DNA of 64,000 nt from IMG/VR virus record IMGVR_UViG_3300021440_000013, positions 62,001-126,000 of that record. One strand, 5' to 3'. Below, piece after piece: positions 6,097-61,998 of this stretch. Numbering within the stretch: position 1 is the first letter of the stretch; every line of letters starts with the position of its first letter. The translations under genes and the position numbers were made by a program. Below the pieces are notes generated by a model that searched no databases, was not told the origin of the DNA, and saw nothing but the letters and a program-made list of their open reading frames with translations.

Positions 6097-6172
6097 TGTT
6101 TTAAAGAGATCCAATGACCGAGGGACTTAACGGTCCCTCGGCTTTTATCACTTTTCTTTTAAGAGGTATGAC

Positions 6173-6490
6173 ATGCGCTTTCGCCACGTTTACATGATCG
6201 GTTTCACCTTTTTGACGTTCTTGATGCTCTTTGTAACGAGCCCTGATGTGGGTATCATCGACAGCTTGCCGATGGGAGCGGGTTTTATTGCAACGGTGGT
6301 CTTGATGCTCCGTGCGGTGATCTATGTTGCGATCCTGCACTTCTCTCGTAAGGCGCTCTTCGACTATCTTGACATGGAAGCGCTTCATGAGAAAGCCAAG
6401 ACCGAACCGATGGCTGCCGCCGTTGCGATGGTTGCGATGGCGATCGCGATGATCGCCATCGCGATGCTTATCGTCGCTGCTGTAGGTTAA
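6173..6490 (+). CDS. Holin-like membrane protein
   Basis: 105 aa with about three hydrophobic segments, directly upstream of a muralytic enzyme. Confidence 0.55.
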   Translation: MRFRHVYMIGFTFLTFLMLFVTSPDVGIIDSLPMGAGFIATVVLMLRAVIYVAILHFSRKALFDYLDMEALHEKAKTEPMAAAVAMVAMAIAMIAIAMLIVAAVG

Positions 6491-6510
6491 ATCAAAAAGG
6501 AGAAAAGACT

Positions 6511-7251
6511 ATGACACGGACCCTTCAGTGTGTGCTGGGGGTCCTGTTCTATGCTTTTTGTATGCTAAGCATGGCGCAGGACGTTAAAACTTATATCCCC
6601 GAGAAGGCCTACCCACTGCTTCCGATCTTTTATAAAGAAGCGGGTAGGCTCATGCCCTATATTCCAACGCCGGCGTATTTTGGTGCTTTGGGTGAACAGG
6701 AGAGCTGTCTTTCACTTAAACACAGTCGGTGTTTCTCGCCAACTTCACAACTTTTAACACCACGGGAACAAGGTCTTGGGATTTTCCAGTTGACTAGGGC
6801 TTTCAAAACCGATGGAAGCACGCGCTTTGATGCACTTAGTGACATGCGTAAAAACTATGCCACTGAGCTCTCGGAGCTCTCATGGACTAACTTAAAGAGT
6901 CGACCGGATCTACAAATCCGAACAGCTGTCTTGATGGTACGAGAAAGCTATCAGCGCTTAGCAGGCGTTAAAGACCCTATGGCGCGCCTTCAGATGGCCG
7001 ACGCAGCCTATAACGGCGGGATCGGGGGCACACTCAAGGAAAGAACTGCGTGCGGCTTAGCGGCTAACTGTGACCCCTCTAAATGGTTTCATAATGTCGA
7101 GCTGTATTGCCTAAAAAGTAAAAAGCCGCTTTATGGGAATCGCTCCGCATGCATGATCAATCGTGAACACCCAGAGCTCATTTTTAATCACCGTCTTCCC
7201 AAGTACCAGCGGCACTATGAAGACTTTATAAAACGAGGTGTTAGAACATGA
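6511..7251 (+). CDS. Lytic transglycosylase (SLT-like) endolysin with N-terminal signal/anchor
   Basis: QESC (catalytic Glu), GLGIFQL and AAYNGG motifs; hydrophobic N-terminus. Confidence 0.7.
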   Translation: MTRTLQCVLGVLFYAFCMLSMAQDVKTYIPEKAYPLLPIFYKEAGRLMPYIPTPAYFGALGEQESCLSLKHSRCFSPTSQLLTPREQGLGIFQLTRAFKTDGSTRFDALSDMRKNYATELSELSWTNLKSRPDLQIRTAVLMVRESYQRLAGVKDPMARLQMADAAYNGGIGGTLKERTACGLAANCDPSKWFHNVELYCLKSKKPLYGNRSACMINREHPELIFNHRLPKYQRHYEDFIKRGVRT

Positions 7252-8063
7252 ATTCGTCCTTAGAGGCGTACCAGCTTCTTGAAAAGCTGGCCGCCAAACC
7301 GATCGACAGCACTTCGTTTCCAACTCACTTTAATGTCGTGATGCGTTTAAAGAACGCCATGAGTGATCCTGACGTGCCTTTTAAGAAAGTCATCGATATT
7401 CTTAGGGGTGAGGTGGTCGTGAGCGCCAAGATCATAAAGACTGCCAACGCGGCAGTCTATCACGGCTATGGCGAAATTAAAGATATCGAAAAGGCCGTCA
7501 TGCGTCTAGGCTTGCAGGCGGTTAGACGCATCTCTTTGGGCATAGCGATGGCGCAGCTCTCCCACTCTAAAGAGATGCTCCACTACACAGCGCTAAGTCG
7601 TTTAATCTGGCTGCATTCGATCTATACGGCCTCCGCGGGTTATGTCTTAGCCCGCGAGTTTACCAAAGTGCATCCTGACGAAGCGTTCTTCACCGGCTTT
7701 GTGGTTAATCTAGGTGCGTTTTACCTGCTTTATAAAGCATCGAGTCATCCTGAACTCAGAGGAGTGGAAGACGATTTAAAGAGCGCAGTGATCACGCATC
7801 ACTTGGCGCTGAGTAGAAAACTTCTTATTCATCTTGAAATGCCGGGCTCGATGGTTGAGGCACTCTACATCGGAGAAGAGGACCATCTTCTTCCCAGTAA
7901 GCCGGTGACTTTACGTGATATCACCCATACGGCCAATAGACTGGCGACGGCGAAGTATAGCTGGTATGAAGAGCGTGAAGAATGTGCTTTTTCAGAAGAA
8001 GTCAAAGCGCTCGAACCGTTGATCAGTGAACATTTTAAAAACACGTTAGCAGAGTTTCGATAA
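7248..8063 (+). CDS. HDOD domain protein
   Basis: 'SAKIIKTANAAVY...IKDIEKAVMRLGL...IWLHS...DEAFFTG' matches the HDOD pattern. Confidence 0.8.
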   Translation: MNSSLEAYQLLEKLAAKPIDSTSFPTHFNVVMRLKNAMSDPDVPFKKVIDILRGEVVVSAKIIKTANAAVYHGYGEIKDIEKAVMRLGLQAVRRISLGIAMAQLSHSKEMLHYTALSRLIWLHSIYTASAGYVLAREFTKVHPDEAFFTGFVVNLGAFYLLYKASSHPELRGVEDDLKSAVITHHLALSRKLLIHLEMPGSMVEALYIGEEDHLLPSKPVTLRDITHTANRLATAKYSWYEEREECAFSEEVKALEPLISEHFKNTLAEFR

Positions 8064-41380: not shown

Positions 41381-43525
<2,145 letters not shown>

Positions 43526-43532
43526 GTGTAGT

Positions 43533-44189
43533 ATGATTGAAAATATGCTCTACGTGACAATCGAGGGCATCGATGGGTGTGGTAAAACCACTCTCGCCGC
43601 TAAGTTGATCGATACCCTTAAACAAAAAGGGTATCGAGTTGGACACTTCTCCATGCTTCCACATGGACGATTGCGTGAAGCGGTACTCTGGGACAAAGAC
43701 CTTACGCCACTTCAACGCGCAACGCTCTATAAGGTTGCTGCTGAGACGACCCGGCTTCAGATGCTTAAGAGCGCCAGCGATTTTGATATCGCTGTCGTTG
43801 AACGCGGGGTTGACACATTTATCGCGTATCAAGGCTTTGGAGACCGACTGCTTAGCGAAGTAAGTCGTTTAGGGGAACTCTACCCGAAGTTCCCAGAGCC
43901 CGACAGGACCTACTATCTCGACGTACCTGTCGAGCTGGCCCTTATCCGAACAGAGCAGCGAGGTAGCGCACTTGACCACTTCGAGCAGCAAGGAGAAGCG
44001 TTCTTCAGACGCATCCAGGAAGGCTTTCGACAGTGCATCCTGGCTGACCAAGACCACAGTGAAAAGTCTGGTCATCACGCTCGTTTTAAGCATGTGGACG
44101 GCACCCTTTCTAAGAATGCCGTTTTTACTCACGTTCTTAACGACGTTCTGGCTTTACTTAAAGAAAAGGAAAAAACCGTAACAAGCTAA
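43533..44189 (+). CDS. tmk: Thymidylate kinase
   Basis: IEGIDGCGKTT P-loop, AYQG, PDRTYYLDVP. Confidence 0.9.
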   Translation: MIENMLYVTIEGIDGCGKTTLAAKLIDTLKQKGYRVGHFSMLPHGRLREAVLWDKDLTPLQRATLYKVAAETTRLQMLKSASDFDIAVVERGVDTFIAYQGFGDRLLSEVSRLGELYPKFPEPDRTYYLDVPVELALIRTEQRGSALDHFEQQGEAFFRRIQEGFRQCILADQDHSEKSGHHARFKHVDGTLSKNAVFTHVLNDVLALLKEKEKTVTS

Positions 44190-44382
44190 GATAAGTTAGA
44201 CGTTCCTTAACAGAGTTAAAAACATTCAAGAGGATTACCATGACCGACACCCAAGTACCTAGTCAAAACACCATTAAAGAAATCTTTTTTGGTGCTCAGC
44301 CGATCCAGGTTTCTCTCCGCAAACCCCGCAAACATACCACCATCCAGCCGGTAAAAGTCGACAACAAGAAGGACGCACTGTA

Positions 44383-45510
44383 ATGAAGGTTTATCTCGAT
44401 CTCCTGAAGGACATTCTCGAAAACGGTCACGATCACGAAGACCGCACCGGCACGGGTCGGCGCAGTGTCTTTTCTCGTGAAGTTCGCTTTAACCTGAAGG
44501 AAGGTTTTCCCTTGGTGACGACTCGCCGGATAAAGCCGGATGTCTTTATCGCGGAGAACCTGTTCTTTCTGTCTGGCCGTACCGACATCAAGTTCTTGAA
44601 CGAGCGTGGGGTGAAGATCTGGGATGCGTGGGCCGTTAACGCTAACACGTTTAAAGGTTACGCGGATAAGATGCTCAAAAAGGGCATCATCAGCGAAGAA
44701 GAAGTGAATCTTCTTCTTGAAACCGTACCGCTGAACCTCCTGGGCGATATCGGTCCGATGTATGGCAACATGTGGCGGATGTGGCCTGTGGCTTCGCCCT
44801 CGGGTCAAGAATTCGGTATCCGTAAAGAAAACATGGTTCGCGCTTTCGAGGAGCTGCCCTCCGATATGCTTGCCGTCGCCAAAGAGGTGTACGACAACCT
44901 GGAAGACGACCAAAAGGAAGGGATGGACTTCGAGACCTTCGCACTGGTTTTTTACTACTCGTCGGTTGATCAGATCAACGAACTTATCTGGGAGCTCAAA
45001 AAGAACCCGTATAGCTCGCGTTTGGTTGTGACCGCGCTTAACCCCCAGTTCACGCCGACACCGGGTTTTAGCCCCGATGAAAACGTCCTTCTGGGTAAAG
45101 GCGCGCTCATGCCGTGCCACTTTGCTTTTCAGTGCTTCGTAAAACCCGCTGTTAAAGAAGGCGGTAAACTGCGTCTGTCGCTTAAAGCGATGATCCGCTC
45201 ATGGGACGTGCCGGTCGGTGGTCCTTTTAACATCGCTGGTTACGCGCTGATCCTGAGTCTTTTGGCGCACTGCTGTGACATGGAGGTCGATGAACTGATT
45301 ATTTCTGCAGGCGATGCCCACATTTATCTTAACCAGATCGATGAGGTTAAACGCCAGCTGGAGCGCGAACCCCAGCCCTTGCCGCTCCTGGCCCTTAGCT
45401 CCGAGAAAAAGGATCTCTTCGCTTTTACAATGGATGACATCAAGATCATCGATTACGTAACGCACCCTAAAGACGCACTTGAACCCATCAAGTACGCCGT
45501 CTCTATCTAA
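44383..45510 (+). CDS. thyA: Thymidylate synthase
   Basis: DRTGTG, GFPLVTT, IWDAW, LMPCH, RSWDVPVGGPFN, DAHIYLN. Confidence 0.95.
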   Translation: MKVYLDLLKDILENGHDHEDRTGTGRRSVFSREVRFNLKEGFPLVTTRRIKPDVFIAENLFFLSGRTDIKFLNERGVKIWDAWAVNANTFKGYADKMLKKGIISEEEVNLLLETVPLNLLGDIGPMYGNMWRMWPVASPSGQEFGIRKENMVRAFEELPSDMLAVAKEVYDNLEDDQKEGMDFETFALVFYYSSVDQINELIWELKKNPYSSRLVVTALNPQFTPTPGFSPDENVLLGKGALMPCHFAFQCFVKPAVKEGGKLRLSLKAMIRSWDVPVGGPFNIAGYALILSLLAHCCDMEVDELIISAGDAHIYLNQIDEVKRQLEREPQPLPLLALSSEKKDLFAFTMDDIKIIDYVTHPKDALEPIKYAVSI

Positions 45511-45947: not shown

Positions 45948-48885
45948 ATGCCGTTATACCTTAAACTCCTTAACCTCGATGAGGTTTTTTCACGCGCACA
46001 AAACCCCGTCATCATCAATGAGCTTCCCAATCTCACAACCGAGGACAGAGAACGCTTCAGTGCGCTTGTACGAGAAACGTACACCAGTGACATGGTGTCC
46101 GTCATGCCAAAATGCGCCTGCGTCGGCGACGAAGGACTTCGAGGCGAACACTTGGTGGGCGAGACGTGCGATATCTGCAACACGACCGTCAAGCACTCGA
46201 TCGAGGATGATATTGTTCCGACGCTCTGGTTTAGAAAGCCTAAAGGCGTCAAGGCACTCATTAATCCGATTGTCTGGATCATGCTCAATCAGCGGTTCTC
46301 AAAAAGCAAGTTCCGCGTACTTCAGTGGCTGACCGATCGACACTACGGTTCAAACTCGGGTCTCAAGACACCCGAGATCATCTATAAGCTTACCGCCGAA
46401 GGTATTCCGAGAGGATACAACGCCTTCGTTGAGAACTTCGATGAGATCACTCGGTTTTTATTCAGCCTCAAGGATTTTCAAGACAAGAAAGGCGCTACAA
46501 AGTCGATCATCGACATGCTCGGCCTCACGCATCCGTCAAAAGATCCTCTCCAGCAGTTGATCCAAGATCACCGAGACTCGATCTTCTGCGAACACATCCC
46601 GCTCCTAAATAAAACCCTTCTCGTGATCGAAAAGACCGCGATGGGCTATGACTACGGTGAGGCGACCATGTTTAGCATGGTCAACGTCACCAACACGATG
46701 CTCTCCATCGACAGGGATTACCACGATAAGAACCCCCTCTCGGTTGAAAACCGCACTGCCCGCATCCATGCGATGCTGGGGGATTACTACACGGACTTCT
46801 TTAAGAAGAACGTGGCACCCAAGGAGGGTTTGATACGTAAGCAGGTGTATAGTGGTCGAGGTAACCACAGCTTTCGGGCAGTGATTACCTCACACGAAGA
46901 CCTTCATGATCATGATGAGATTCACATACCGTGGTGCGTAGCGGTCACGGTATGGCGTCAGCACATACTAAACGTGATGATGCGGGATGACCATCCATGC
47001 GGCGGCTATACGCTTAATAAAGCCGTCAGTCTCATGATGAGTCACATCTACAAATACCACCCACATCTTGACCAGATCTTTAAAGAGTTTATACAAGGCA
47101 GTGATAACGGCCGGGGTCCTTGCGTTTTAGTTCAACGAAATGAAGAAGGTTTGTATTCTTGAGCTATAAAGGAATGCGAATCTCGGTTTCCTTCTGTAGA
47201 AATACAGTCGACACAACACGCTTAATTGACGGGAACCCCATAAAACTCGATACACCAAACGTATGCTTCGAAAGACATGCGTGGCCGGAGTAATTAGCCG
47301 GGTAGGGTAAAAGAGATCGAGATGCGGCTTTTATAAAGCCAAAATTGGAAACCACGCAGCTGATCTCCTAAGGCCATGTGGCTATGGAGCGAGTTCAACG
47401 ACTATAAACGCCAAGCTAATGGGCAGTGAATAGCGTGCATCTGACCGCGTTAAGGCGAAGATGAAGAGATAGTCTGTTCTATGATGAGAGTCGTAGCGGG
47501 TGCCAGGAATCGCACCGGGGTGATCTTGCAAGCCACCTGGACAAAAAGCCAACACTAATGCAAGGTTCAGCACAGCCGTGCTATATCACAAAAGTCAAAC
47601 CTGATCCGAAGGACACAACGGTTTCAATCAGTGATCTAATCGCTATGTAGAATGGCCTCTTGATTAGAAATGGTCAAGTGAACTCTCTCTAATTGCTGGA
47701 AAACCCTGAAGGCTGCCTCACCACAAGCATCGCGAAAGCAGATGTTGATGGTTTAACAACGAGGCGGATGATCCGATAAAGTCGGTGAAAGGGGCAACCG
47801 TGGAGTGAAACACTCCCTTTAGCAGCGAAGACCCTAAGGCAAACGATATGGGTAACGTTCAACGATCATGGCGGGAGCCAGTAGAGCCTCAAGCGAGGCA
47901 GAAATGGGAGACACCTTACCGTGTGATGACGAAGGTGAAGATATGATCTGTTCCATGATGAAAGTCATAGCGGGTGCCAGGAATCGCACCGAGTGAAGAA
48001 AGTACGTCGTGATGACGGAGCGCCTTCACTGGACAATAAGACAGCGATGAATGCTTAATTAGGCCAGTTGGTTAGAAATAATCAACGAGTAACCCCTTGA
48101 ATTGCTGGAAACCCCTAAAGCTGTCTCACCACTGCGAGCTGAAAAGCAAAGCCATGGTTTAAAAACGAGACGGATGCGGCGTAAGCCAAAATGGGCAACC
48201 GTGGGCTCTAAGAGCCCCTTTAGCAGCGAAGACCCTAAGGCTTCGGCTATGGGTAATGTTCAACGACCATGTCTCTCAAGTGAGAGTAGCGGGGGGCACC
48301 TGACCACGTAACGGTGAAGGTGATGATATGTTCTGTACTATGGCGAAAGTCATAGCGGGTGCCAGGAATCGCACCGGGATGGACCCACGACCCATCTGGA
48401 CAATTAGGATTACGACGGTGAATAACATTGCCGTTCGATCCAGTAATGGATTGAATTATGAGTGCGGAATAAAGCATAGACCCTGAGATGGGGATGTGAA
48501 CCGAAGGCTAGATGTAAAGATTTAGTCAGGGGCAGAGCATAGGAGGTGATCCTGCGTAAGCAGACTATAATCCTCCCACGAGTCCGCGCCACCCGACCGT
48601 TTTAAACGAGGGTGAAAACGTATGCCGAACTATAGCGAACCAAAGCCATAGAAGTAGAGGATAAAAAGCCTTTACGATAACATCTTGGATGAGATCATGT
48701 TTATACTGGCGCTTGACAAGAAGATGGAGCGGATGTTTTACCCGCTCAGTCCCTTCTTTAACTTGCTGCCCCTTAATAAACCCCTCGAGATCGGTCGAAA
48801 TGCATCAATGACCGACTCAATCGTTGCATCTACTTCGGAATGGATCGAAGCACAAAGAAGAGACATTAAGAACAACCTTCAGTAA
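45948..48885 (+). CDS. Non-virion RNA polymerase beta' N-terminal subunit (phiKZ gp55-like), five exons: 45948-47141, 47549-47644, 48041-48055, 48408-48419, 48688-48885 (504 aa spliced)
   Basis: N-terminal Zn ribbon, RKQVYSGR..SFRAVIT; splicing restores VQRN|PTL...LIA|TAMNA|DYDG|DEIM, i.e. the NRxPTL and NADxDGD motifs. Confidence 0.88.
47142..47548 (+). ncRNA. Group I intron 1 of beta' (407 nt)
   Basis: Exon ends in U, intron ends in G; P7 ttcaacGACTA / aagagaTAGTC. Confidence 0.85.
47645..48040 (+). ncRNA. Group I intron 2 of beta' (396 nt)
   Basis: aattgctggaaa, cagcgaag, P7 GATCA/TGATC (compensatory), terminal G. Confidence 0.85.
48056..48407 (+). ncRNA. Group I intron 3 of beta' (352 nt)
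   Basis: Homologous to intron 2; P7 GACCA/TGTTC has one mismatch; terminal G. Confidence 0.8.
48420..48687 (+). ncRNA. Group I intron 4 of beta' (268 nt, different subtype)
   Basis: P1 gacggt/gccgtt with U.G at splice site; P7 GCATA/TATGC; terminal G before GAT GAG. Confidence 0.8.
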
Positions 48886-55808: not shown

Positions 55809-57278
55809 ATGAACAGCCAGATCTTCGTTGCAAACATGCTCATCCAAGAGACGGGTACGTTTAATCAGCTCTATGCGCGCCCCTACGCAGCCCACACCAC
55901 CAATGAATCGCTCGAGATTCTTTCTCGACGTCTTGAGTCGACGATGTACGGTGATCCGTCGTCCCGTGTGATGGGTTCTTTGATCGCGGGTATCTCAAGT
56001 GGTCTTGTGATGCCCGACGCGTCCTGGGAGCGTCGTCTCTCGATCCCGAATGGTTGGAATGAACGGCGCCTGCGCTTTATCATGGAAGTGCATGTTCAGG
56101 CGGCCTTTAACACACAGGTCTACTACCTACAAGGGTACTCGGATCACGTCGGCGTCTCTGCAACGGGTTTTATTGACCCCCAGATGCCGTTCTTCATCAA
56201 CAGCTACGTACGCGTGGGTCGAAGCACCGATTATACCAACGTCGGCATGACGATTGACCGAGTCAGTGAAATGGCCCAAGTGATCAATGGTCAGTTCCAC
56301 ATCACGGACGCCATCTCGGGCCAGGTCTTTACGCTTCGGCCAGAAGACCTCATGGTCGGCATCCAGAGTAATTATTTCAACGACGCATTTGCAAGTAGCG
56401 GGAGTCCGTCTGTGGGTAACATGCTCGATACGCGCACACGAGGCTTGCCCTCTACGGTGCGCTCTAACCGCAGTAATGCCATCCCGAGTAACTTCATCGC
56501 TAATTACATCTCGGGGTATCGTCGTGCGGCGTATTCGGCTGAGTTTGGCCGGGGAGATGAAGATATCTACACGCGCACGATCCAAGACCTGCATGAGCCC
56601 TCGCCGTATGAGAATCCGTTTATTCGTGCACTGAGTCAGGTAACGGGGATCCCCAACACCACGACCTTTACGATGAGTGATCTGGTTTCGATTGATCCGG
56701 ATGCGGTCAGTTCTGGACGCGTCAGCTATCAGCCTGCGCGTGATGTTTTCCAACTCCATCAGACAGGGCAGACTGAGGACTGGGGTGGTGCGAACCTTAA
56801 GACCCAGTTGGCGACGCTTTTGATCAACTCCGTCTCGGGTTTGATGATCGACTGCATGTTGAAATCGATCGCGCTTGACACAACCACGCTTACGGTAGAT
56901 GGACAGCCGTATACGCGGATCATCAACGCACAAAGCTTCACCAATATGAATCTGTCTGCACACTTCGTGCGGTTCATTGAGCGGTTTAACTCCGAAATTC
57001 TTCCGGACGTTACCTACAACGGCAGCTTTGCGATCGACGCGGTCATCATGATCGATCTTCATGGCCAGAGTTCTGTCGATATCTCGGTTGATGGGGATGC
57101 TCGGATCCCCTATGCGGCACCGAGTTTCTGCGATTCGATCTTCACACCCGTGGTAACGACGGACACTAACCGCTATCACGATTTGATTAACGGCATGGAA
57201 TACATTACCAAGGCGGTCGAGTCTGCTGTGCCTCGGCTCTTCACTGCGGGTGGTGACAACCTGGTTCACGACGTCTAA
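55809..57278 (+). CDS. Probable PicA/Imp1 nuclear import factor (phiKZ gp69-like)
   Basis: 'ETGT......RPY', 'IPNGW.E.RLRF', 'YLQGYSDH', 'P.FCDS...PV.T'; synteny. Confidence 0.55.
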   Translation: MNSQIFVANMLIQETGTFNQLYARPYAAHTTNESLEILSRRLESTMYGDPSSRVMGSLIAGISSGLVMPDASWERRLSIPNGWNERRLRFIMEVHVQAAFNTQVYYLQGYSDHVGVSATGFIDPQMPFFINSYVRVGRSTDYTNVGMTIDRVSEMAQVINGQFHITDAISGQVFTLRPEDLMVGIQSNYFNDAFASSGSPSVGNMLDTRTRGLPSTVRSNRSNAIPSNFIANYISGYRRAAYSAEFGRGDEDIYTRTIQDLHEPSPYENPFIRALSQVTGIPNTTTFTMSDLVSIDPDAVSSGRVSYQPARDVFQLHQTGQTEDWGGANLKTQLATLLINSVSGLMIDCMLKSIALDTTTLTVDGQPYTRIINAQSFTNMNLSAHFVRFIERFNSEILPDVTYNGSFAIDAVIMIDLHGQSSVDISVDGDARIPYAAPSFCDSIFTPVVTTDTNRYHDLINGMEYITKAVESAVPRLFTAGGDNLVHDV

Positions 57279-59288: not shown

Positions 59289-61998
59289 ATGGAAAATAAA
59301 AAAGCACTTTATCGACGCGTCAATGAACTTCACCCAGAGCTTCTGGGTGTGCACGCACTTAACTATGCGACCGCGTATAACGCGCCTGCCCGTGGCGTGA
59401 TGTTTGCGGGACACTGGGCTCAGCGACTTGTCATCAAAGGCTCTGAGCCCAAGATTATCCAGACGGGCGCTGAAGAAGAGTTTGGGAAATACACACTCTC
59501 GATCAAGATGCCCAAGGACGGTGTGATTCTTCGGGTCATTGAGCGTTATTCAACCAATTCCCCCACGGATCAGATTGGTTTTAATCCTGAAACGCTGGTG
59601 ATCTACCGGGCACACGAAACCGGCGAAGTAGACTGCTTTACCATCCCATACCATTCAAACTACCATCCGAACTTTGGCTTTAAATATGAGCCAAAGGAAG
59701 CCTACGAGGAACTAGTTGTTGGGCGTAGTTTTCCGAAGGACACGGTCATTGCGGACTCTCCTGCCGTAAAAGGAGAGTCGCACTACACCTACGGAAGGAA
59801 TCTAAACGTCGTCTACATGAGTCACCCGAACGTTGGTTTGGACGGCTATGTCATTTCTCGAGATGTTCTCGATGAGTTTGAATTTCGTTTTTACGAGACA
59901 CGCACTGTCGAGTTTGGTGCCAATGAGTTTCCACTCAACATCTACGGAACTGAGGAGATCTATAAGCCGTTTCCTGAGATCGGTGAATATATCCGTGAGG
60001 ATGGGTTGGTGGCAGCACTACGGCGTTTCGAGTCCTCGCTATCACCTGCTTTGTTAAGTCGAAAAGACCTCATGGAGGTCGATCAGTATTTCGACAACCG
60101 AACATACTCCCGTCCTGGTGTGGGTCGTGTGGTCGACATGGTGGTGATCCACTCAGAAAACATCAACCGACAACTGCCTCCGCAGATGACGGATCAGCTC
60201 AATAAATACGCACGGGCATTGATCCGTTTTCATAAGGAGATCGTGAACTTTGACATCCATACTACGGTCGAACACCGTAAACAACACGGCGGCGCAAAAC
60301 CACGCTACAGTGAACAGCTTCAACGTTTGATCGTTGAATCGCTGGCGATGGTCGAGAACGAAAACCCAAGGAGTCGTCAAAACCTCACGCTGGCTTATCG
60401 GAAAGAACCCTTAGATGGCTGGCGCGTCACTTTTACGATCGAATATTTGATAAAACCAGACCGCGGGTTCAAGATCACCTGCGAAAATGGTGGTTTGTAC
60501 ATAGTCACTACACACTAGCGGTTTTATATACTCTGTGGAACTCATACAACCACGGAGTATAGCCATGAAAATAGAAGCGTTTCGAGTAATACCGGGATTC
60601 GAGGAATGGTGCATCGCGCGGGATGGTAAGATCTATCACGCTAAGACTGGAAAAAGAATTCGCACCCATCAGTCGCACTGAAAACAAAGTATTCGGATCA
60701 ACTCGAGACAGAAAAGTGTGCAGTAGATTAAAAACAAGCCTTACGTGCGGCGAAAGCCTACGTAATATCCCGAAGAATTGCTGGGACGTCCTAAGAGCCT
60801 CACTACCACAAGCATCGCGAAAGAAGATGTTGACGGTTTGAAAAGTGTGAGGATAGTGCAGTGGGCAATCAGCAGCCGTCTTGGCCTGTCGTAAGACGAC
60901 CTCGAGGTTCAACGACTATCCCCTTACCAGGGAGTACACTTAAGTGAGTGGAAGTATCGGGTACCCAAACAGATCACGCTGTGGGTAAAGATATAGTCTC
61001 GCCTGCATGGAAAGCATGCAGCTGCACGTTATGGTGCGGGTGGTGTCTAACGAACACTGCTGAAGGTCGCGAAGGGTGTTATTTGTCGCATCGAAGAGCC
61101 GGAGAACATGCCAGTGGATGCAGATGGAAATCGCGCAGACATCATCTCAGGTCCTGACTCGATTCCGGGCCGGATGAACCTAGGGCGTCTTTATACGCCC
61201 TATTTTACTGGCGCAGCACGCGATGTTCGCAAACAGATGTTAGAAGAAATGGGTTTCGATCGAAACTTCAAAGGTCCGATCGAAACGTCCGCGTTACACA
61301 CCATCGACCCCGTTCGATATCAACACGGTATCAAAACCTTACTTCTTTTCTATTCAATTGTTTCACCCCGAACCTACAAGGAATTCACGGAGATCCTGAC
61401 AGACGAAGAGCGCCTAGAGTGGGTCGCGAAAATCATTAACGATAAGATCTATCTATACATCCCGATCGAGAGTGAACACATGCTCGACGAGATGGTGTTG
61501 ATGATTGAGAAGAATTTTAAATTAGTCTATGGTCCGGTCTCATACGTGGGGCGAAGTGGCCAACGTGTCGTTACGCGTGATAAGTTTAGGATCGCGCCAC
61601 TACCCATGATGCTTCTCGATAAGATCGCTGACACATGGCTTTCTGTGGATATCGGTAAGTATAACAACTTTGGTCTCGTGGCCGCCATGAATAAGGCCGA
61701 TAAATATTCGGCACCTTGGAAAAAGACGCCTCCACGGGTACTGGGTGAAACCGAAAGTGGTCTCTATGTCTCTTATGGGGGTCGCGAAATGATCGCTGAG
61801 CTTCATGACCGAACCGGCGCCGTGGCCAGTCAAAAGGAGATTTCCAAAACCATCCTGGGTGCCGCCGATCCGATCAACATCGAAGAAGTGATTAACAGGG
61901 AGAAAGTTCCGTTGGGTAATTCTCGCCCGATCCAGATTTCGCAGCATCTGTTTAACTGCGCTGGTTTTTCGATTGTCTATAGTGAAGAGAAAGTATGA
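59289..61998 (+). CDS. Non-virion RNA polymerase beta C-terminal subunit (phiKZ gp71-73-like), exons 59289-60494 and 61072-61998 (710 aa spliced)
   Basis: Splicing restores GFKITCENGG|KGVI...MP.DADG.RADII...GRMNLG. Confidence 0.88.
60495..61071 (+). ncRNA. Group I intron of beta (577 nt)
   Basis: P1 ggtggt/gtcact with U.G; aattgctggga, aatcagcag, P7 GACTA/TAGTC; terminal G. Confidence 0.88.
60565..60681 (+). pseudogene. Truncated NUMOD4/HNH-type homing endonuclease remnant inside the intron
   Basis: GGAG RBS + MKIEAFRVIPGFEEWCIARDGKIYHAKTGKRIRTHQSH*, resembling the N-terminus of phage HNH endonucleases. Confidence 0.6.

Follow-up and report, generated by a model that had tools for sequence, protein, structure and literature searches.

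Here we examined a jumbo-phage RNA polymerase gene, located at 45948-48885 (+) of a 64,000-nucleotide stretch of DNA (the window) taken from IMG/VR virus record IMGVR_UViG_3300021440_000013, a contig of 217 kb. The gene encodes the N-terminal beta' subunit of a phiKZ-type RNA polymerase, probably the non-virion enzyme given its homology to PhiPA3 gp054 and phiKZ gp55-type proteins. It consists of five exons separated by four intervening segments with group I intron features, all on the plus strand, and the Mg-binding NADYDGD motif is divided among three of these exons.

Exon-intron structure of the polymerase gene

Exon 1 (45948-47141; 398 codons) ends in LVQRN. A tblastn search with this region found 280 jumbo-phage records, with PhiPA3 gp054, 201phi2-1, and FLC9 among the top hits, annotated as RNA polymerase beta/beta', as well as RP12, and we recovered 95 protein homologues. 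Exon 2 (47549-47644; 96 nt, PTLMQGSAQPCYITKVKPDPKDTTVSISDLIA) is collinear with FLC9 gp381 and 22 other intact homologues. It is followed by two micro-exons, exon 3 (48041-48055; 15 nt, ACAGCGATGAATGCT, encoding TAMNA) and exon 4 (48408-48419; 12 nt, GATTACGACGGT, encoding DYDG), and by exon 5 (48688-48885), which runs from DEIMFILALDKKMERMFYPLSPFFN to NNLQ and a stop codon and is conserved in relatives. The intervening segments lie at 47142-47548 (intron 1), 47645-48040 (intron 2), 48056-48407 (intron 3), and 48420-48687 (intron 4), and exons 2 to 4 together total 123 nt. Each upstream exon ends in T (47141, 47644, 48055, and 48419), each intervening segment ends in G (47548, 48040, 48407, and 48687), and all four are phase 0. 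These features had been noted in a first-pass annotation made from the sequence alone, which we confirmed in full.

Removing the four segments gives a 504-amino-acid product reading QRNPTL...LIATAMNADYDGDEIM, which is gap-free against 22 intact homologues through QRNP...NADYDGD. To test the junctions independently, we ran a spliced-alignment dynamic program against a 77-column gap-free profile of intact homologues. It recovered exactly these four junctions when T at -1 and G at the intron end were required; without that requirement the protein was the same, with a 1-nt junction ambiguity. Close relatives lacking individual introns confirm two of the junctions directly. In L007 and L008 (we use L numbers for the homologous loci we compared), DLIATAMNA and DYDGDEIMF are contiguous, and in L006 and L009, DLICTAMNA is contiguous.

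As the first-pass annotation predicted, ORF-based annotation of this gene yields truncated subunits. Most database homologues are ORFs truncated after QRN, DLIA, NA, NAD, or DFDG. The exon pieces of the window's gene gave no Pfam hit, whereas the intact FLC9 homologue hits PF00623 at residues 369-439, across exactly this region. The Y in place of the usual F in the motif is common in this clade.

Introns 1 to 3 are related group I introns

Introns 1 to 3 aligned to the Rfam group I model (RF00028) with scores of 64.6, 55.4, and 46.1 bits (E = 1.3e-15, 7.5e-13, and 4.7e-10), although intron 3 falls below the gathering score of 50. The three are related to one another and may resemble the T4 td intron, although no blastn hit to T4 was found. 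An RNAalifold consensus of 11 orthologues and paralogues contained 55 pairs, of which 28 showed compensatory double changes, and P9.1 and P9.2 appear in this consensus fold.

Intron 1 (407 nt) follows QRN. Its P1 pairs GAAAU (47137-47141) with GUUUC (47186-47190), a pairing we adopted because it covaries with the exon in L006 (GCAAU with GUUGC), and its P7 pairs GACUAU with AUAGUC. A 44-nt insertion between the 5' splice site and the guide sequence could compete with P1. Orthologues sit at the same site in L006, L009, and L007. Intron 2 (396 nt) follows DLIA; its P1 pairs GCU with GGC (47654-47656) and its P7 pairs GAUCAU with AUGAUC. This site is empty in L006, L009, and L007. Interestingly, the best match to intron 2 is an L006 intron at a different position (site 53, after DYDGD; 224.5 bits), with which it shares two insertions. 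Intron 3 (352 nt) follows NA (site 48). Its P1 pairs GCU with GGC (48062-48064), its P10 pairs GAUUA (48408-48412) with UAAUU (48056-48060), and its P7 (GACCAU with AUGUUC) carries the C.U mismatch flagged in the first-pass annotation. Orthologues are found at the same site in L006 (254 bits), L009, and L007, and the mismatch is conserved in all four site-48 orthologues, while P7 covaries between lineages. P1 of introns 2 and 3 is short, with only 3 exon-side base pairs in each.

A P9.1 hairpin (GGGUGCCAGGAAUCGCACC) at 47498-47516 has identical copies at 47972-47990 and 48357-48375. Orthologues of introns 2 and 3 in L006 and L009 carry a different hairpin, implying sequence homogenization among the three introns within this genome.

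Intron 4 is a compact group I intron of a different lineage

Intron 4 (268 nt), which follows DYDG (site 52), had no match to any Rfam family at E up to 10. Relatives in Gram-positive phages were likewise missed by the group I model, apart from one 35-bit partial hit. We therefore relied on manually assigned helices and pair counts in an alignment of four sequences. P1 pairs GACGGU (48414-48419) with GCCGUU (48430-48435), P10 pairs GAUG (48688-48691) with CAUU (48426-48429), P3 pairs 48462-48467 with 48584-48589, and P7 pairs GCAUA (48537-48541) with UAUGC (48621-48625). The helix order is P3, P4, P5, P6, P7 (5' strand), P7.1, P3', P8, and P7 (3' strand), which is the group I signature. P3, P4, P7, and P7.1 form standard pairs in 4 of 4 sequences, with compensatory changes in P4 (3 pairs), P7 (1 pair), and P7.1 (3 pairs). 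The P1 at this site also covaries in L035 and L080. The fold z-score of intron 4 is -5.1, with 0 of 200 shuffles as stable, and nhmmer gave E = 1.5e-24 to an intron at the identical site in Aeromonas phage AhC3_1. Homologues also occur at this site in Raoultella phage VB_ZK_P1 and, next to endonuclease ORFs, between fragments of split DNA polymerase, terminase, and tail genes of Gram-positive phages. The site is empty in L007.

The active-site region is an intron hot spot

To determine how widespread this arrangement is, we searched for further homologues. A single-protein search of IMG/VR found only the window's own contig, so we used an alignment query instead. Introns under 200 nt (as in L110 and L011) and genes scoring under 130 were excluded from the counts, and we set aside artifacts of the spliced alignment, namely, spurious introns in the poorly conserved first eight profile columns, a 3-nt "exon" in L136, meaningless low scores from truncated contigs, and an apparent site 56 in L009 that is really site 53 (DYDGD/EIMF; its 3' end reads CTGGACAATGTG/GAGATAATG). 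Of 115 distinct homologous genes, 54 (47%) carry at least one intron in this 52-codon stretch, at more than ten distinct sites, and 61 carry none. Four genes carry four introns. The three others besides the window's gene (L035, L125, and L096) are metagenomic, with their introns confirmed by Rfam, and one of the four-intron genes has 12- and 9-nt micro-exons. The first-pass annotation's view that four introns within 123 coding nt is extreme holds against the literature we could search, but the arrangement is not unique.

Insertion sites cluster on the two nucleotide-conservation peaks of the gene, and related ribozyme lineages occupy different sites in different genomes. The 12-nt DFDG micro-exon preceded by NA occurs in VB_ZK_P1 and in L065, L076, L097, L103, L109, L112, L156, and L166. 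None of the four introns in the window contains an ORF of 70 amino acids or more or an endonuclease-like ORF, but orthologues at sites 11 (after QRN), 43 (after DLIA), and 48 in L007, L008, L094, and L096 carry HNH_3 or NUMOD-type ORFs. The window's copies therefore look like endonuclease-less derivatives.

Discussion

Taken together, these data indicate that four ORF-less group I introns, three related to one another and one of another lineage, divide the active-site region of this polymerase gene, and we put the probability of this reading at roughly 0.87. That all four self-splice in vivo is an inference from sequence, as is the homing history. Under this model, each intron folds into its own ribozyme, pairs the end of the upstream exon with an internal guide sequence (with a U.G wobble at the splice site; 5, 3, 3, and 6 exon-side base pairs for introns 1 to 4), is cut by a free guanosine, and joins the exons at its terminal G. 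Only a transcript that has lost all four introns would encode the segment holding the three aspartates that bind the catalytic Mg2+; in-frame stops fall at codons 7, 2, 1, and 2 of introns 1 to 4, respectively. We infer that the introns arrived by endonuclease-driven homing into the two most conserved DNA stretches of the gene and later lost their endonuclease genes, and that lineages have also moved between neighboring sites and exchanged segments. Inteins (there are in-frame stops and no protein domains), group II introns (268 to 407 nt is too small), and expression as separate polypeptides (pieces of 4 to 5 residues cannot be subunits) were rejected.

The first-pass annotation further suggested that splicing order may be constrained and may gate late transcription. 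Nothing we tested supports either suggestion. The first 3 nt of exon 3 pair with intron 2 (P10, ACA with UGU) and its last 3 nt pair with the guide sequence of intron 3, while bases 1 to 5 of exon 4 pair with intron 3 (P10) and bases 7 to 12 pair with intron 4 (P1). Given that these pairings do not overlap, the sequence imposes no obvious order, and the four ribozymes could act independently.

It remains possible, though doubtful, that the stack of introns is selected rather than merely tolerated, either as a kinetic gate on production of the late polymerase or as protection from homing endonucleases of coinfecting phages, since no recognition site longer than 15 bp survives in the target stretch. 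In keeping with selection, endonuclease-bearing introns target exactly these sites in relatives, a second phage in the same metagenome (L125) carries four introns at a different set of sites, and an intron endonuclease is known to act as a weapon between chimalliviruses (PMC11620839). In a related reading, the 52-codon stretch may be a battleground between coinfecting jumbo phages, in which stacking introns until only 9- to 15-nt exon islands remain makes the carrier immune while its relatives are cut, and the same process could be the route by which jumbo-phage polymerase genes became split just downstream of this domain, as proposed previously (PMC7598289). However, our analysis does not address a benefit, the 61 intron-free homologues show that the introns are dispensable, and selfish accumulation at conserved sites explains the pattern without one.

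It is unlikely that segment 4 is another kind of element, such as a different ribozyme class or an insertion removed by a protein-dependent route. Although the absence of an Rfam match would allow this, its helix order, covariation, 6-bp P1 with a U.G at the splice site, 4-bp P10, terminal G, and relatives in split genes argue against it, and it is far too small for a group II intron. Least likely is a decaying pseudogene, for which the subthreshold score and P7 mismatch of intron 3 and the loss of all endonuclease genes could be cited, because all five exons are intact, in frame, and conserved, the mismatch is shared by four diverged orthologues and so is tolerated rather than recent damage, the helices show compensatory changes indicating selection on the fold, the multi-intron layout recurs in many otherwise intact jumbo-phage genomes, and no other NADFDGD-type motif or paralogue is present, at least within the 64-kb window.

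Group I introns in phage genes are well known. In PhiPA3, a single intron with an active HNH endonuclease lies next to conserved catalytic aspartates in gp210, a virion RNA polymerase beta-subunit gene (Birkholz et al. 2024, PMC11620839), whereas here four ORF-less introns separated by micro-exons lie in the beta'-N subunit. The core of intron 2 is 84.6% identical over about 140 nt to PhiPA3 191814-191951, which may or may not be the gp210 intron. Staphylococcus phage Twort orf142 appears to carry three small ORF-less group I introns, with potential for exon skipping, in a gene that does not encode a polymerase active site (Landthaler and Shub 1999). Multiple introns that break annotation also occur in the capsid gene of crAss-like Zeta-group phages, which is in five fragments (PMC7886860), in Jug phages with about 18.5 introns per genome (PMC12880540), and in Bastillevirinae with up to three introns per gene (PMC11878797). 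Their host genes are capsid, terminase, DNA polymerase, and ribonucleotide reductase, and none of these reports describes introns only 12 to 15 nt apart or dissection of the NADFDGD motif. Fungal mitochondrial cox1 genes, for which short exons are mentioned (PMC7325650), likewise seem to stack group I introns, but in an organelle context with maturases and nuclear splicing factors. Among isolated jumbo phages, VB_ZK_P1 (PV662128) has the same pair as introns 3 and 4, AhC3_1 (PV158447) has the intron-4 type between DFDG and DQL, and these phages and Klebsiella phage phiKp_32 (LC768500) have one or two introns, which are unannotated, with the gene recorded as separate or hypothetical ORFs.

In the literature we could search, we found no description of a universally conserved catalytic motif assembled from 9- to 15-nt micro-exons by up to four neighboring ribozymes, of this arrangement recurring across a whole phage clade, or of related ribozymes occupying different sites in different genomes. 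The locus offers a natural system for asking how adjacent ribozymes fold and splice without exon skipping when exons are shorter than a P1 plus a P10; if the phage is nucleus-forming, splicing would also have to proceed without coupled translation. It extends the single PhiPA3 example of phage-phage conflict to a hot spot with many competing elements, and it gives a concrete test bed for the proposal that split polymerase genes arose from intron activity.

Gene structure and identity of the interrupted polymerase subunit

The + strand holds an ORF at 45948-47162 whose product ends ...GPCVLVQRN and then runs into a stop. Downstream of it we found three short in-frame coding pieces, at 47549-47644 (PTLMQG...SDLIA), 48041-48055 (TAMNA), and 48408-48419 (DYDG), followed by a terminal ORF at 48688-48885 (DEIMF...stop). 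Every upstream piece ends in T, every intervening segment ends in G, and all junctions are phase 0. The intervening segments are 407, 396, 352, and 268 nt long, and the three internal exons total 123 nt. The first-pass annotation, which had read this region as an RNA polymerase active-site motif split by four group I introns, described these sequence features accurately in every detail.

To identify the gene, we compared exon 1 with database sequences and found that it matches one protein in 280 jumbo-phage records. Among the top hits are Burkholderia phage FLC9 (36% identity), Ralstonia RP12, 201phi2-1, and PhiPA3 gene 054, mostly annotated as an RNA polymerase beta or beta' subunit. The intact FLC9 protein (495 aa) hits Pfam PF00623 (Rpb1 domain 2) at residues 369-439, which is exactly the stretch interrupted here, whereas the separate pieces from the window hit nothing. 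On the understanding that PhiPA3 gp054 and phiKZ gp55 correspond to this subunit, we take the gene to be the N-terminal beta' subunit of the non-virion polymerase. It lies on the 216,876-bp contig IMGVR_UViG_3300021440_000013, also known as Ga0213919_1000016. Immediately upstream, at 41495-45510 (+), are genes for an NAD-dependent DNA ligase (676 aa), a thymidylate kinase, and a thymidylate synthase, in an order that is conserved in all close relatives we retrieved.

The spliced product and natural intron-less alleles

Joining the five exons gives a product of 504 residues. From QRN to 24 residues past DGD, this product aligns without a single gap to 22 intact homologues; for example, FLC9 reads QRNPSLERGSAQLVYITKVKTVVEIPTVSISILDVKGLNADFDGDQLNF where the window reads QRNPTLMQGSAQPCYITKVKPDPKDTTVSISDLIATAMNADYDGDEIMF. 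To locate the junctions independently, we wrote a spliced-alignment program that aligns a 77-column profile of these homologues to raw DNA, allowing introns in any phase but requiring T before each intron and G at its end. This program returned exactly the four introns that had been proposed.

We next retrieved syntenic relatives from public assemblies. Two of these loci, L007 and L008 (80% identical in exon 1), have introns only after QRN and after MNA, and read DLIATAMNA and DYDGDEIMF without interruption. Two others, L006 (88%) and L009 (77%), read DLICTAMNA without interruption. Junctions 2 and 4 are therefore seen joined in nature, while junctions 1 and 3 are seen joined in more distant intact genes.

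Group I features of introns 1 to 3

The Rfam group I model RF00028 scores introns 1, 2, and 3 at 64.6, 55.4, and 46.1 bits, respectively, against a gathering score of 50, with E values of 1.3e-15 to 4.7e-10, so that the third falls below threshold. The model ends at P9, and the real 3' ends lie 52 to 70 nt further on, after two more hairpins. The three introns are paralogous, with 65 to 80% identity over the core. When we aligned them with eight orthologues from three relatives, we obtained a consensus fold of 55 pairs, 28 of which show compensatory double changes, in P2, P3, P6, P8, P9, P9.1, and P9.2.

P7 is not in that nested fold, but it covaries between lineages. Numbering the insertion sites such that introns 1 to 4 of the window occupy sites 11, 43, 48, and 52, P7 reads GACUAU/AUAGUC at site 11, GAUCAU/AUGAUC in intron 2, GGUCAU/AUGACC at site 53 in L006 and L009, and GACCAU/AUGUUC at site 48. 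The last of these carries the C.U mismatch flagged in the first-pass annotation. This mismatch is present in all four site-48 orthologues, so it is an old, tolerated feature rather than fresh damage. P1 of intron 1 is GAAAU/GUUUC, and in L006, where the exon reads GCAAU, the guide reads GUUGC. Introns 2 and 3, however, have only three exon-side pairs in P1 (GCU/GGC).

Interestingly, a fifth group I intron (577 nt, phase 0, with T before it and G at its end) is found elsewhere in the window, at 60495-61071 (+), between ORFs 59289-60518 and 61108-61998. It splits an RNA polymerase beta-subunit gene between ...KITCENGG and KGVICRIEEPENMPVDADG; if the corresponding E. coli beta motif is taken as GDKMAGRHGNKGV, this would place the intron inside the conserved GxK...GxKGV active-site motif. 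Rfam gives it 49 bits against the threshold of 50, and a nucleotide profile search (nhmmer) links it to intron 2. It contains a short ORF (about 60566-60682) that looks like the truncated N terminus of a NUMOD4/HNH-type endonuclease, and its downstream exon is homologous to phiKZ-like polymerase beta subunits.

Intron 4 belongs to a different lineage

Intron 4 has no Rfam hit, but it folds far better than shuffled controls (z = -5.1). Searches with blastn and nhmmer found relatives at the identical site, between DFDG and D, of a different polymerase gene in Aeromonas phage AhC3_1, at the same site in Raoultella phage VB_ZK_P1, and in the metagenomic locus L080, although in the latter the site was assigned by a low-scoring spliced alignment. 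In AhC3_1 (PV158447, about 56409-56660), ORF64, annotated as "DNA-directed RNA polymerase," is truncated at ...AGGDFDG by an unannotated intron of the intron-4 type, after which the reading frame resumes as DQLSANAIQ.... VB_ZK_P1 (PV662128, 25835-26199 and 26212-26522; also Klebsiella phage phiKp_32, LC768500), an isolated and deposited jumbo phage, carries two unannotated introns, with one intron after NA, then DFDG, then an intron of the intron-4 type, then DTMY. The polymerase gene is annotated there as separate hypothetical proteins. Relatives of the 3' half of intron 4 also lie between fragments of split DNA polymerase, terminase, and tail genes in Gram-positive phages (Alicyclobacillus phage MMB025, Listeria phage LIS04, Staphylococcus phage PG-2021_4, and Clostridium phage phiCP13O), and the DNA polymerase and terminase cases lie next to endonuclease ORFs. 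RF00028 misses these relatives or barely detects them, suggesting a group I lineage that the general model covers poorly.

Read by hand, the helices of intron 4 come in the group I order: P1 (GACGGU/GCCGUU, with U.G at the splice site); P2 with a GNRA loop; P3, P4, P5, and P6; the 5' strand of P7; an extra hairpin (P7.1); P3', P8, and the 3' strand of P7; P9 and P9.1, then a terminal G; and a 4-bp P10 (GAUG/CAUU) abutting P1. In the four full-length sequences, P3, P4, P7, and P7.1 are standard pairs in every case, with compensatory changes in seven pairs. The site-52 P1 also covaries with the exon. Where the exon reads GAUGGU, in L080 and in a further homologous locus, L035, the guide changes at the partner base, to GCCAUC in L035 and GCCAGU in L080. 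We accordingly assign intron 4 to group I, as a member of another lineage.

Use of the micro-exons

In the 12-nt exon, bases 48408-48412 pair with the first five bases of intron 3 (P10) and bases 48414-48419 pair with the guide of intron 4 (P1), leaving one base free. In the 15-nt exon, the first three bases can pair with intron 2 (P10) and the last three with the guide of intron 3. The pairings do not overlap, and nothing in the sequence forces an order of splicing, contrary to the suggestion in the first-pass annotation that this order may be constrained. There is, however, a real risk of exon skipping, because introns 2 and 3 share the guide GGC and their upstream exons both end in GCU. Each intron has an in-frame stop within 1 to 7 codons, so unspliced RNA yields a truncated protein that lacks the Mg-binding aspartates.

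A clade-wide intron hot spot

Of 95 protein homologues, most are ORFs that stop after QRN, DLIA, NA, NAD, DFD, or DFDG. To determine how widespread these interruptions are, we retrieved 160 further loci and eight contigs and ran the spliced aligner on all of them. Among 115 distinct genes with a good alignment, 61 have no intron in this 52-codon stretch, 26 have one, 18 have two, 6 have three, and 4 have four. The four-intron genes are that of the window (sites 11, 43, 48, and 52), those of L035 and L125 (sites 11, 45, 49, and 52, with micro-exons PNAD of 12 nt and FDG of 9 nt), and that of L096, a relative with introns at sites 11, 43 (with an HNH ORF), 48, and 54 (in phase 2). All four introns are above the Rfam threshold in both L035 and L125. 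L125 (Ga0213919_1000155, 36,794 bp; locus coordinates 6134-7650) is a second jumbo phage from the same metagenome as the window. In L096, an IS605-family OrfB (TnpB-like) gene, at 10585-11188, lies a few kilobases downstream of the polymerase gene.

Site use is concentrated at sites 52 (26 genes), 48 (19 genes), 49 (14 genes), and 11 (14 genes). These coincide with the two peaks of nucleotide conservation, at codons 9-11 and 46-52, which is what endonuclease-driven homing into conserved DNA predicts.

The relatives also provide some insight into the history of these particular introns. Introns 1 and 3 have clear orthologues at the same sites in L006, L009, and L007. In L007 and L008, the site-11 and site-48 introns carry HNH_3 and NUMOD-like ORFs, and the window's copies therefore look like endonuclease-less derivatives. 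Intron 2, in contrast, sits at a site that is empty in those relatives. Its best match is the site-53 intron of L006 (224.5 bits), and it shares two insertions with the site-53 introns of L006 and L009. The guide sequence reads GGCC in the window, which pairs with GCU, and GUCC in L009, which pairs with GAU. Likewise, the lineage of intron 1 occupies site 54 in L096. Finally, the P9.1 hairpin GGGUGCCAGGAAUCGCACC is identical in introns 1, 2, and 3 of the window but differs in the orthologues of introns 2 and 3, which points to gene conversion among the tandem introns.

Relation to known phage introns

Single group I introns in jumbo-phage polymerase genes have been documented or predicted, in PhiPA3 gp210 (PMC11620839) and in phiKZ gp56, gp72, and gp179 (PMC10914365). 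Intron-dense large phages have also been described, with up to three or four insertions in one gene (PMC7886860, PMC12880540, PMC11878797). In literature searches combining group I introns with NADFDGD, micro-exon, or nvRNAP terms, we found no description of introns 12 to 15 nt apart in a phage, of the catalytic beta' motif being dissected, or of this hot spot. A review notes the proposal that split jumbo-phage polymerase genes arose through intron mobility, and that the beta' split lies just after this domain (PMC7598289). The hot spot lies immediately upstream of that split. The idea that the introns gate late transcription remains speculation, and splicing itself has not been observed, but the observation and its core interpretation stand. 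The finding is better described as a striking example of a previously undescribed clade-wide intron hot spot than as a one-off.
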